A stretch of 63,185 bases of DNA, filler included, from Reticulomyxa filosa (GCA_000512085.1; 21 parts of 21 records of this genome joined end to end with filler, not necessarily neighbours in it); one strand, 5' to 3'; numbered from the whole stretch's first letter, positions 24,873-27,922 are shown. Notes: a model not told the origin generated them from the letters alone. A program made the numbers and translations.

Positions 24873-27800
24873 TTAATTTAACGTGGCAGGTTTCTCTATA
24901 TCAGTATAGGTGTTTGTAACAGAAACTTCTTTATTTTGACTATTTCGGTTATTCGAAACAGAAGCACTTGGGCCATCACTCTTTGATGGCTCAGAAAACG
25001 AGTTCTTGCGCTGGAGTTTTTGGAAATTTTGGGTATCTTTAGGATAGATATCTCCGTAGTTCATGATAAACATCTGTATCAAACTGTTTTGAGCATGTTC
25101 GTTACGACAATTTCGTTTGCCATACTCAATTTTTTGCAGGCATGAGAGTAACAATGACAAGCGCATTCCCAAATAAACAAAAAACACGGTAATAAAAAAA
25201 AGATAATTATAAAATTGTCTATACGTTCCATTCCTTTCCAATAGAAAAATAACAACGGAGATCATGGTATGTAGAAAAAATATGAAATAGGATTGCAAAA
25301 AAAAGTGGTCCATCACCATTAAATAAGGCACTGGAGGAAATTGGTTTGATAATGTCCATTTGAAAGTAAATAAAGTCAGCAATAAAGGCACTAATAATGA
25401 CATGCGATAAAAAACGGGATGTGCTTCGACAAAATAAGCTTGCAATGCCACAGAATCCACCAAAAACAATGGGAATAAAACCTGAAAGGGAAAAAAGAAA
25501 AATTTTACTACTTTTAAAGTGTTTATTTTCCTTTTTTTCAAATTTTCCTACTATTGAATCAAAAAAGTAAACCTGATAAATAAAATTGCCAAATCTTCGT
25601 CGAATGGGTACTGACACAACAAGCATTTGATGTTTCTTGTAGTTGATTTTACGTGACTCGAAGTGACAGATCGGGGTGCATATGTCCCAATCTGTCCCTC
25701 CAAGTCCCAGCAATTTCGACATTGGAGCAATGCTCACTTTGATATGCTCTTTGTCAAACCGTGCATATTGTCGGTCCACATTTAATTGAAAATAGAGACG
25801 TAATCGATGGGCATCAAATGGATACTTTTTCAAATCAAAAAATTGATTGAACGTACCACTGACTTGTCCTCGTTGGAAAATAGCGTCTTTTGTATCACTG
25901 ACATAAGTTACTTGAGGCATATTATGTACGTTATAATAATCCGTGGCTTCGTCTTCATTCAACAGCTCAACAAACCATGGAGGATGTGTTATCTTTTCCA
26001 GAGAAAAGTTCGGGTTGGAAGTACTGAAAGCGGAAGCTTCAGATGGAATTCCACCGTTGTAAAAGTTGTAATGAACATCAGCATAAAAGTTGCCCTCCAA
26101 CCAATTTATTGACTTGATATGCTCGAATGTTAGATCGCATTTGATTTCCGCTGGTTCTGATGGCAAATGCAACATCCACGATTCTTTCAAAGCCCTACAC
26201 ATTACTGCGCTCATGTAATCCCAAGTTCTCGACCACGCCCTTTGTGCTGTTCCGTCCCACATCACACCCAACATCGACTGCAACATTTGTAGAAATGCTT
26301 TCTTTCCAACCACAAAATGCCTATTACAAAAAAAAAGCAAAACACAAAAATCATGTCAGTAGAGATAACTCCATTAGTAACAAAAAAAATTTTTAAAAAA
26401 TTTAAACAAATTAAACTTGGGTTGGATCTGAAATTCGTAATGCTTTGCACCTATTTCACGTAGTATTTGTGGAAAATGCTCATCTTCCGCAAAATGAATT
26501 ACTCCACCCAACTGTTGCACCATTCTAGTGTTGTCCGTTACAGAAAGAATGTGCTTTAAGCTCTATCATTTATTATTTTGTAATTGTCACTGTCTATTAC
26601 TTGTAAACATTTCGGATTACGATACAACTTTTTTACGTATACATATGTATACGTATAGCTACAAAAGCGTTTTTAAAAAAAAAAATTGAACCAAACTGTA
26701 CTTTCAGCTAAAAGCAATTCGACAAATTTTTCAGCAGCAACAGCAATATTAGCCTCAACAAAACCCCACGTCAATTTAACACAAGCAATTTCATCTTTGG
26801 ATGGCTTGCGTAATTTCAAATCATCGCTGACAAACAGTTTAATCATTACAAACGAGGTTATACGTACCCAAGATTCTTTGATTTCTTTCGTCCACGCGCC
26901 CGCCAAATTTTGTCGCAGTGCTTGCAATAAAAACTTTCGCAATTGCAAGACGTCAGATGAGTTTACTCCTTTCCTTTCATGAATCTCCCGTATTCGGTTC
27001 AAATACGAGCTCAATTTCTCATACGTGCTCTGATTTCCTTGGCGTGACCCATCGGATGCATGAGAGTCACTATCATTATCCCTACTGCCATCACTGCTTC
27101 CTGTCTCTGTACTGCTATCGGAGCTGCTTTTGCTGGTGCTAGTGCTGGCGCTGTTGCTGTTGCTGTTATCGTTATTCTTACTATTGCTCACATGTTTACT
27201 TCTGCTTTTGCTCTTAGTTTTGCTCTTGCTTTTTGTTTTACTTTTGCTCTTAGTTTTGCTCTTGCTTTTTGTTTTACTTTTGCTTTTACTCACACTTGCG
27301 CTTTTTCGCTTGTCGTTGTTTTCATGATCGCTTTTCGTGTTGCTGTTTTCCAACGGATGAGCGCTATGGTCACGCGGTGATTCACGGTTAACAGTGTCCG
27401 CAATGGCGTTGTCTGTCTCCACTTCGATTTTTGCAACTTGATTTCCTTGCGGCTTTGGGCTAGGCCGGAAATCTTCAGGTTGCAAATGCGGCACCGAATT
27501 CTCGCGATTGCCACCATCATTCTCAATGTTGTTCATTTTCATTTCGTCTGCCAACAAGTTCACAATATATTGCCAGCTATCAACAATTACAGAGATTTGG
27601 ACACCATGATACATTCCATTGTCGTCTATGCAATTTCAAACAATCAACAATTTATTTCAATTTGTGTGATGTGAGACAAAAGGACCGATACATGTAAGCT
27701 TTTAGAAAAGAAAAAAGAACCTTCCATTTCCTCGTCCGTGGATAACGCTTTGGTTAGGCTCTTAATCAATAAATCTCTCCTTTTGTATCCCAGTCGCCAC

Positions 27801-27922
27801 GATTTTATTATATTTACTTTGTCTTTGGCGGTAATGTTATTCCAATAGTCAAGCGAAGTGCTTTGGCCTAATTTTTTTTTAATTTCATTTGTTTTGTCTT
27901 CTGTTTTTATTTCTTCTTTCAT
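24873..27922 (-). CDS. Tandem globin-globin / Cys-less pentameric ligand-gated ion channel (Pro-loop receptor) fusion, ~877 aa, 5 exons
   Basis: Exons 27922-27721, 27625-26697, 26562-26417, 26320-25573 and 25481-24873 join through GT-AG introns in frame (2634 nt). Globin F-G-H motifs: LNRIREIHERKGV...AWTKEIKESW and LREIGAKHYEFQIQPKHF...LGVMWDGTAQRAW. pLGIC motifs: FDLKKYPFDAHRL, DWDI, IRRR, M1 VLFPLFL, M2 RMSLLVPLLLTL, FPPVPYL.MD, M3 and M4. Confidence 0.88.
27199..27290 (-). repeat. Coding tandem repeat (KSKSKT)n within the Ser/Lys-rich insert of globin 1
   Basis: 18-nt periodic repeat translating to SKSKSKTKSKSKTKSKSKTKSKSKTKSKSRSK. Confidence 0.85.

Follow-up and report, generated by a model that had tools for sequence, protein, structure and literature searches.

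A putative globin-channel fusion in the foraminifer Reticulomyxa filosa: two globins ahead of a Cys-less pentameric ligand-gated ion channel subunit

Introduction

Ligand-gated ion channels of the pentameric kind (pLGICs) lacking the Cys pair of the Pro-loop include DeCLIC from Desulfofustis, whose large accessory N-terminal domain modulates gating (PMC9897478, PMC12664993) and is so far the only pLGIC accessory N-terminal domain with a solved structure (PMC9897478). In globin-coupled sensors, such as HemAT, DosC/YddV, AfGcHK and a Leishmania globin-adenylate cyclase, an N-terminal haem globin senses oxygen (O2), nitric oxide (NO) or carbon monoxide (CO) and controls a C-terminal output domain (PMC1457004, PMC7475203). 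This work deals with a gene of the foraminifer Reticulomyxa filosa whose predicted product has features of both kinds of protein, since its domain order is globin 1, globin 2 and Cys-less pLGIC. The gene is located on the minus strand, at 27922-24873, of a stretch of 63,185 nucleotides composed of records of assembly GCA_000512085.1 joined with filler (hereafter, the window).

DeCLIC (6v4a, 9ftg) resembles the R. filosa protein in being a Cys-less pLGIC that carries an accessory domain N-terminal to the beta-sandwich. However, DeCLIC is bacterial and its accessory domain is periplasmic, composed of beta-rich lobes and calcium-dependent, whereas the R. filosa protein belongs to a eukaryotic host, has no signal peptide and carries two all-helical globins with a proximal His. 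ELIC, GLIC and sTeLIC also lack the Pro-loop Cys pair, have a very short M3-M4 loop and share the same fold of the extracellular domain (ECD) and the transmembrane domain (TM-scores, by target, of 0.68-0.70 for the channel half of the relative P0010), but they are devoid of N-terminal sensor domains, their agonists are small amines or protons, and the identity is only 13-18%. The protist Cys-less pLGICs of Jaiteh et al. 2016 (PMC4795631) are similar in coming from unicellular eukaryotes and in lacking the Cys-loop cysteines; the main text of that inventory does not mention Rhizaria, Reticulomyxa or globins, nor does it contain any term tried for an additional N-terminal domain.

With respect to the globin-coupled sensors, they share with the R. 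filosa protein the presence of N-terminal globin(s) and a C-terminal output domain in one polypeptide. Their outputs in the literature searched are chemotaxis, cyclase, kinase and similar domains, but never an ion channel. Their globins belong to the sensor (protoglobin-like) family, whereas the R. filosa family matches best the Pfam Globin family (PF00042) and globins of the flavohaemoglobin, neuroglobin and leghaemoglobin types. The Protoglobin model (PF11563) was matched by two of the ten proteins scanned, in both cases below threshold (13-17.5 bits, the cut-off being 25). To judge from its sequence, the R. filosa protein is a globin-coupled sensor in layout that stands outside that globin lineage.

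The Reticulomyxa filosa gene and its relatives

Positions 20521-28173 of the window correspond to the whole of the 7653-bp record ASPP01008059.1 of R. filosa. This record is AT-rich, with a GC content of 23-46%, and the genome has roughly 35% GC. Five open exons (E1 to E5) and four GT-AG introns, read from 27922 to 24873 on the minus strand, yield one frame of 877 codons (2634 coding nucleotides, that is, 877 residues and the stop). Exons were searched singly, and the join itself was checked by frame arithmetic and by translation of the joined exons. The original prediction, which had been made from the DNA sequence, described a five-exon frame of about 877 residues joined through GT-AG introns; all exons are open in that frame, the total length agrees, and the motifs quoted for it were all found in their places.

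In GenBank the locus is annotated as two minus-strand genes, one at 27922-26673 (384 residues, no Pfam match) and the other at 26523-24873 (509 residues). The latter, ETO26131.1/RFI_11007 (P0001), is encoded by exons 3-5 and bears the UniRef label "Globin domain-containing protein". The first gene ends with the TAA at 26675-26673 and the second starts with the ATG at 26523; this boundary separates the B helix of globin 2 from its E helix. RFI_11007 is also spliced differently at intron 4, which gives 22 extra residues (about 286-307 of P0001) before M1 that are absent from the relatives; taking out the 91-nucleotide GT-AG intron 25572-25482 removes this insert and renders a colinear M1. The E1-E5 pieces fall colinearly and in order on the relatives in the family alignment, including P0010, a relative encoded by a single open reading frame (ORF). 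In pairwise BLASTP comparisons E1 matches residues 21-83 of P0010 (E 7e-9), and E2 matches residues 92-115 (E 0.007) and 115-231 (E 4e-17). As judged from these alignments, the locus 27922-24873 is one five-exon R. filosa gene, and the GenBank split through globin 2 cannot be right.

A phmmer search with E4 against 1.84 billion representative proteins found 31 relatives (E 8e-32 against relatives). Over all searches, at least 12 full-length relatives have the same domain order, and their sources are Bolivina and Nonionella transcriptomes, two marine metagenomes and one contig from the Joint Genome Institute (JGI). The match to E4 begins 290-525 residues into the full-length relatives, so that each of them possesses a long N-terminal part. 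The members from Bolivina argentea and Nonionella stella (EukProt transcriptomes) are single transcripts coding for 827-941 residues; the architecture that the original prediction suggested looking for in Rhizaria transcriptomes is present in these two data sets. Five members come from metagenomes, four of them (P0005, P0006, P0010 and P0012) from a single Tara assembly and P0011 from a different metagenome; they have 707-870 residues and are single uninterrupted ORFs in genomic DNA. Therefore, the fusion is not an artefact of gene models. Some of the metagenome contigs also carry clearly eukaryotic genes, such as those for EBP, Nop16 and UBX proteins. A protein search with P0003 brought in P0047, which comes from JGI and is named "hemoglobin-like flavoprotein", together with P0046 and P0048 of the Bolivina and Nonionella transcriptomes. 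Word-indexed protein searches with P0010 and with the alignment returned only the query itself, and the clusters that a feature search of the ESM Atlas yielded were of pLGIC type and weak (0.82), none of them combining globin and channel, which is a lead only. According to the aligned sequences, this is a conserved family of Foraminifera and marine metagenomes in which two or three globins precede the channel. That globins and channel are on one transcript in R. filosa is indirectly but strongly indicated by the relatives, which are single ORFs or single transcripts.

In two pairs of relatives, P0002/P0032 and P0046/P0049, the partners share at least 90% identity and have the same length, and each pair is listed for both Bolivina argentea and Nonionella stella. 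These near-identical pairs may reflect cross-contamination of the data sets, and their species assignment is uncertain.

R. filosa also possesses a second paralog, located at 790-3471 of ASPP01023705.1 (L006), in which globin 1, globin 2, the beta-sandwich and M1-M4 are recognized in this order in ORF fragments. It has been split in GenBank as well, into products of 156 and 425 residues (RFI_27346). Its introns are placed differently: there is none at the F/G boundary of globin 2 or before M1, and there is one inside the M2-M3 loop.

The globin domains

Globin 2 scores 34.4 bits in P0001 with the Pfam Globin model, whose cut-off is 22 bits. The F-H part of globin 1 of the R. filosa protein, taken alone, reaches 20 bits (E 1e-3), just under the cut-off. 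In the paralog both globins pass (25.4 and 37.7 bits), and relatives give Globin matches down to E 1e-30, with two matched stretches in most of them. Of the two globins of the original prediction, globin 2 is thus directly supported by Pfam; globin 1 fails narrowly in this copy, yet it passes in the paralog and in relatives and folds as a globin in the model of P0010.

When the profile of the family alignment was compared with the PDB, the best matches were the Hell's Gate globins 3s1i (E 7e-22) and 3ubc (E 9e-22), with 3wfw (E 3e-18), neuroglobins, leghaemoglobins and thermoglobin at lower ranks. The first globin of the profile matches 1hlm (E 5e-11), and the G and H helices of E4 match leghaemoglobins. 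Hell's Gate globins of Methylacidiphilum (HGbI, 3s1i and 3ubc; HGbRL, 3wfw) are therefore the best sequence matches of solved structure for the channel-proximal globin, and in the members with three globins the match covers Tyr B10, Phe CD1, Gln E7 and His F8. In HGbRL, too, a globin is fused to a further domain, Roadblock/LC7, which is of signalling type. However, the Hell's Gate globins are bacterial, soluble and consist of a single globin, and globin 2 of the R. filosa protein lacks the Tyr B10/Gln E7 pair.

The AlphaFold2 model of P0010 has a mean predicted local distance difference test score (pLDDT) of 77.5 and shows helical domains at about 40-205 and 214-347. In VIA-align comparisons, residues 211-343 of this model superpose on Glycera haemoglobin 1hbg with Z 17.2 (root-mean-square deviation, rmsd, of 1.9 Å, 133 of 147 residues), and residues 46-348 match the tandem-linked di-alpha haemoglobin 1o1m with Z 17.0 over 258 residues. 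Residues 33-207, corresponding to globin 1, match 8h17 with Z 14.1 over 148 residues. The 3-on-3 fold is thus seen in the model of the relative P0010, the model of the R. filosa protein itself covering only the G-H helices.

The proximal His at F8 is invariant in both globins of the nine aligned relatives and the R. filosa protein, and Phe CD1 is invariant in the last, channel-proximal, globin of the relatives. Distal positions are more variable: E7 is Gln in five of the nine relatives and Gly, Asn, Lys or Glu in the others, and B10 can be Trp, Phe, Tyr, Leu or Val across the family. Most members with three globins share with Hell's Gate globin I the combination of Tyr B10 and Gln E7. The subfamily with two globins has a shortened E helix, and in globin 2 of the paralog E7 still seems to be His and CD1 Phe. 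P0002, P0003, P0007 and P0008 (827-941 residues) have 140-250 residues ahead of the two globins detected by Pfam; this N-terminal region appears to be a third globin-like domain, of a more degenerate kind.

In the R. filosa gene, globin 1 begins in E1, which codes for its A-C helices; the A helix (about 27835-27797) follows a hydrophilic N-terminus. E2 codes for the E helix (about 27602-27552), where Gln occupies an E7-like place, for the F-H helices (27023 to about 26838), whose F8 His codon lies at 26981-26979, and for a linker that comes after them. The A-B helices of globin 2 (26801-26697) occupy the end of E2. The CD region, the short E helix and the F helix are in E3, the F8 His codon being at 26442-26440, and the G and H helices (26319-26176) are in E4.

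The channel domain

The C-terminal half of the protein is predicted to be a complete Cys-less Pro-loop pLGIC subunit, composed of a beta-sandwich, M1-M4 and a very short M3-M4 loop. The whole beta-sandwich of extracellular type (about 26151-25594) is encoded by E4. Its Pro-loop (25842-25792) contains YPFD at 25824-25813 and no Cys pair, and this FPFD/YPFD motif is kept across the family alignment. M1 starts at the end of E4 (25593-25573), just after the pre-M1 motif RRR, and continues in E5 (25481-25428), where the M1 Pro is found. Four hydrophobic segments of the E5 region correspond to M1-M4. M2 (25406-25350) has Arg at 0' and Leu at 9' (codon 25379-25377), the M2-M3 loop (25349-25311) contains PPVPY, M3 (25310-25239) is followed by an M3-M4 loop of nine residues, and M4 (25211-25137) precedes a hydrophilic C-terminal tail of 87 residues. 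This tail departs from what is common in pLGICs, and so does a Pro at M2 6', a place taken by Thr in relatives. The channel hallmarks that had been proposed (Pro-loop without the Cys pair, pre-M1 arginines, M1 Pro, 9' Leu, PPVPY and short M3-M4 loop) are all in the sequence. Exon 26320-25573, whose continuity had been singled out for confirmation, has exact boundaries and holds both the G/H helices of globin 2 and the entire ECD.

Different searches relate this half to pLGICs. E5 matches the NCBIfam model TIGR00860 LIC (E 3e-4), and in a phmmer search against the PDB its matches are almost exclusively pLGICs, all at M1-M3, with DeCLIC at the top, together with sTeLIC and ELIC, and with subunits of the gamma-aminobutyric acid type A (GABA-A) receptor. 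The family profile matches residues 11-319 of ELIC, covering both the ECD and the transmembrane domain (E 3e-15 to 6e-15), as well as GLIC, DeCLIC, sTeLIC and GABA-A. An AlphaFold model of E4, built with a 27-row alignment, consists of two helices and then a beta-sandwich (pLDDT 90; predicted TM-score, pTM, 0.75), and its best 50 Foldseek matches in the PDB are all pLGICs, through their extracellular domains (E about 4e-10). The channel half of P0010 gives TM-scores (by target) of 0.61-0.70 with whole pLGIC subunits and Z-scores of 19.1 for GABA-A, 18.4 for ELIC and 17.9 for DeCLIC (rmsd 3.5 Å, 291 residues). Assembly of the subunit into a pentamer would be expected from its membership of this family. 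Since members differ from one another in the M1-M2 loop (-1' region), no call on ion selectivity is made.

Exon structure and neighbouring genes

E1 (27922-27721, 202 nucleotides, 67 open codons) starts with the ATG at 27922-27920, and an in-frame TAA is found immediately upstream. Intron 1 (27720-27626, 95 nucleotides, GT...AG) provides a junction whose frame is colinear with the relatives. It is followed by E2 (27625-26697, 929 nucleotides, 309 open codons) and by intron 2 (26696-26563, 134 nucleotides), whose donor is GTTTGG at 26696 and whose acceptor is ...GATAG ending at 26563. E3 (26562-26417) has 146 nucleotides and 48 open codons. Intron 3 (26416-26321, 96 nucleotides, GT...AG) splits a Lys codon, and the GenBank model P0001 has the identical junction. 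E4 (26320-25573) has 748 nucleotides. Intron 4 (25572-25482, 91 nucleotides, GT...AG) is in phase 0, and the relatives are colinear over pre-M1/M1 without any insert. E5 (25481-24873) has 609 nucleotides, including the TAA stop at 24875-24873. The donors of the four introns are GTTC, GTTT, GTTT and GTTT.

Intron 2 is the least certain junction of the gene model. The donor at 26696 and the acceptor at 26563 were chosen because the paralog has a GTTTGG donor at the homologous codon and equal length; with this acceptor, the exon-3 products of the gene and of the paralog align from the first residue. Other arrangements were tried and rejected. An E2 ending at 26702 joined to an E3 starting at 26524 was found to be out of frame after the junctions had been enumerated, and the acceptor that directly precedes the ATG at 26523 shares a frame with none of the nearby donors tried. 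A 41-nucleotide intron within E2, near 26867-26827, is not a multiple of 3, and the relatives are colinear through the region.

A neighbouring gene on the plus strand (22747-23605; GenBank model of 531 residues) codes for a protein with RING (C3HC4) and IBR domains, an E3 ubiquitin ligase of the RBR type. The gene for P0011 also adjoins an IBR-domain gene (L010, 204-896). This shared neighbour may reflect a conserved neighbourhood or chance.

Membrane topology

ELIC, GLIC and sTeLIC reach the periplasm by means of a signal peptide. Neither a signal peptide nor an N-terminal hydrophobic segment was found in the R. filosa protein or in the 12 full-length relatives checked. In all of them the hydrophobic helices are confined to the C-terminal four-helix block, and long hydrophilic tails are present after M4. 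A folded N-terminal part of 560 residues that lacks a signal peptide is not expected to cross the membrane. As the family members checked all lack such a peptide, a cytosolic position is the most likely one for the globins, the beta-sandwich domain, the M2-M3 loop and the C-terminal tail; this would be the reverse of the orientation of classical pLGICs. The extracellular sensor that was implicit in the original prediction is therefore doubtful.

Five metagenomic proteins of 362-389 residues (P0017, P0021, P0025, P0026 and P0031) are stand-alone pLGIC relatives; they have no N-terminal hydrophobic signal, and their starts are rich in Lys, Arg and Ser. This is a hint that an unusual topology may extend to the entire clade, but the starts of these proteins may also have been called wrongly.

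Proposed mechanism and alternative explanations

All in all, we consider it probable, with due reserve, that one gene codes for two globins and a pLGIC that together form a haem-sensing channel facing the cytosol, and the protein is a strong candidate for an ion channel that senses gas or redox state directly. Each globin would bind haem through the conserved proximal His at F8, and the globin helices would shift when O2, NO or CO binds or when the redox state of the haem changes. This shift could pass from the H helix of the last globin, through the 8-9 residue linker, to the first beta-strand of the ligand-binding-type domain of the channel; the length of this linker is conserved in the alignment. 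The haem state would then bias the ligand-binding-type domain and, via the contact between the Pro-loop and the M2-M3 loop, the gate at 9' Leu. Such a transmission of the haem state is proposed because of the analogy with the globin-coupled sensors and with the N-terminal domain of DeCLIC (PMC9897478), and both haem binding and gas gating are put forward here as proposals. A homopentamer could carry up to ten haems, and a cytosolic orientation would suit haem loading in the cytosol and a gas ligand that diffuses freely. The fullest form of this proposal, an inside-out pLGIC family with a cytosolic "extracellular" domain and two or three haem-globins whose pore is gated by O2, NO, CO or haem redox, which would make it the first channel with a built-in globin gas sensor, is advanced only tentatively, as a possibility for which we hold rather low confidence.

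Several observations weigh against this proposal. No sequencing runs (RNA) are listed for 24700-28173, and several in-frame GT-AG pairs are possible at the E2/E3 junction, which is ambiguous when the sequence alone is considered. The EF corner of globin 1 is interrupted by a low-complexity insert of 170 residues, rich in Ser, Lys, Asn and Asp and encoded by E2 (about 27542-27024), so that this copy need not bind haem. The distal pocket of globin 2 is atypical, with a short E helix and Val at B10; CD1 is probably Leu and E7 probably Arg, according to a paralog-guided alignment that rests on the uncertain start of exon 3. Lys and Arg densities are similar on both sides of the membrane, so that the positive-inside rule does not decide the orientation, and the N-termini of some relatives are automated gene calls. 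Finally, the Pfam channel models Neur_chan_LBD (PF02931, cut-off 26 bits) and Neur_chan_memb (PF02932, cut-off 28.1 bits) have no match on the R. filosa exons, and the fusion relatives remain below threshold (best, 23.4 bits with PF02932). Of the HMMER models that the original prediction proposed as a check, only Globin gave a match above its cut-off, for globin 2. Pfam finds almost nothing on single exons because the domains are split across them, and since the Neur_chan models fail, databases show only "globin". This failure reflects divergence and not another fold; P0026, a stand-alone relative linked to E4 at E 2e-5, passes PF02931 with 27.4 bits.

Other explanations refer to the gene itself. 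The locus could contain two separate genes, as in the deposited annotation: one for a soluble globin-like protein of 384 residues and the other for a channel of 509 residues with a partial globin. Reading through E2 does meet an in-frame TAA, an ATG at 26523 opens exon 3, and no RNA run is listed for the locus that could contradict this arrangement. However, it would leave the A-B helices of globin 2 in one protein and the E-H helices in the other, all the full-length relatives are continuous at this point (five of them as uninterrupted ORFs), the paralog shares the GTTTGG donor at the same codon, and the 22-residue pre-M1 insert of the downstream model is found in no relative. We regard two genes as very improbable. 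It is also improbable, though somewhat less so, that this copy is a paralog in decay or without function, within a family that does function. The long insert of globin 1, with its 36-nucleotide tandem repeat (27205-27288; 2.3 copies, 97% matches) coding for a Ser-Lys-Thr run, could be read in that way, as could the probable Leu CD1 and Arg E7 of globin 2, the Pro at M2 6', where the relatives have Thr, and the ambiguity of the E2/E3 junction. Nevertheless, all 2634 coding bases are open in a genome of roughly 35% GC, in which random frames close fast; both F8 His residues, YPFD, the pre-M1 Arg, the M1 Pro, 9' Leu and the PxxPY loop are kept, and the relatives also bear inserts of varying length at the same EF corner.

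The fusion could instead be real without the globins being gas sensors that gate the pore. They might play a structural or assembly role, act as enzymes of the NO dioxygenase or nitrite reductase type, or buffer haem or redox state, while another ligand or pH would open the channel at the canonical inter-subunit site. The variation of the distal pocket (E7, B10) across the family and the shortened E helix of the two-globin subfamily agree with this, non-haem globins exist (PMC8717448), and the beta-sandwich is fully kept and could hold its own ligand site. Moreover, the main agonist site of DeCLIC is not its extra N-terminal domain, whose role in gating is modulatory (PMC9897478). Yet the invariant F8 His in both globins and the invariant Phe CD1 in the last globin of the relatives are hard to explain without haem, and the short H-helix linker of conserved length suggests mechanical coupling. 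Both explanations overlap, since a modulatory haem sensor would fit either. Non-gating globins are, on this evidence, a serious but rather unlikely alternative, and the haem-sensing channel encoded by one gene is preferred.

Significance

No description of a globin-pLGIC fusion was found in the literature searched, in agreement with the novelty originally claimed. A full-text search combining globin with pLGIC, Foraminifera or Reticulomyxa returned nothing relevant; InterPro may already hold an automatic superfamily-level annotation of the architecture. No globin-channel fusion is mentioned in a review and a survey of globin diversity, and the paper behind the Bolivina and Nonionella transcriptomes mentions neither globins nor ion channels. 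Annotation based on Pfam calls these proteins no more than "globin" or "hemoglobin-like flavoprotein", and in R. filosa the genes have been cut in two, so that surveys of domain architecture would have missed the family. The protein combines known kinds of system, a pLGIC with an accessory N-terminal sensor and an output coupled to globins; it would be considerably more novel if gas gating or the inverted topology were confirmed.

In the known cases, O2 and NO sensing acts on ion channels indirectly, for example by way of cyclases, kinases, hydroxylases or haem that is loosely bound. If the proposal is true, a channel subunit fused to globins would provide a path from gas to ion flux within one protein. 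The family would add a haem sensor to the range of accessory domains of pLGICs, and it may represent a pLGIC clade with the ligand-binding domain on the cytosolic side.

R. filosa is a freshwater or terrestrial naked foraminifer. The argument from life in sediments that accompanied the original prediction is loose for this species and fits better the Bolivina and Nonionella relatives, which come from oxygen-poor sediments (PMC8153729). For foraminifera that live across steep gradients of oxygen and nitrate, these fused channels would be candidate molecular sensors.

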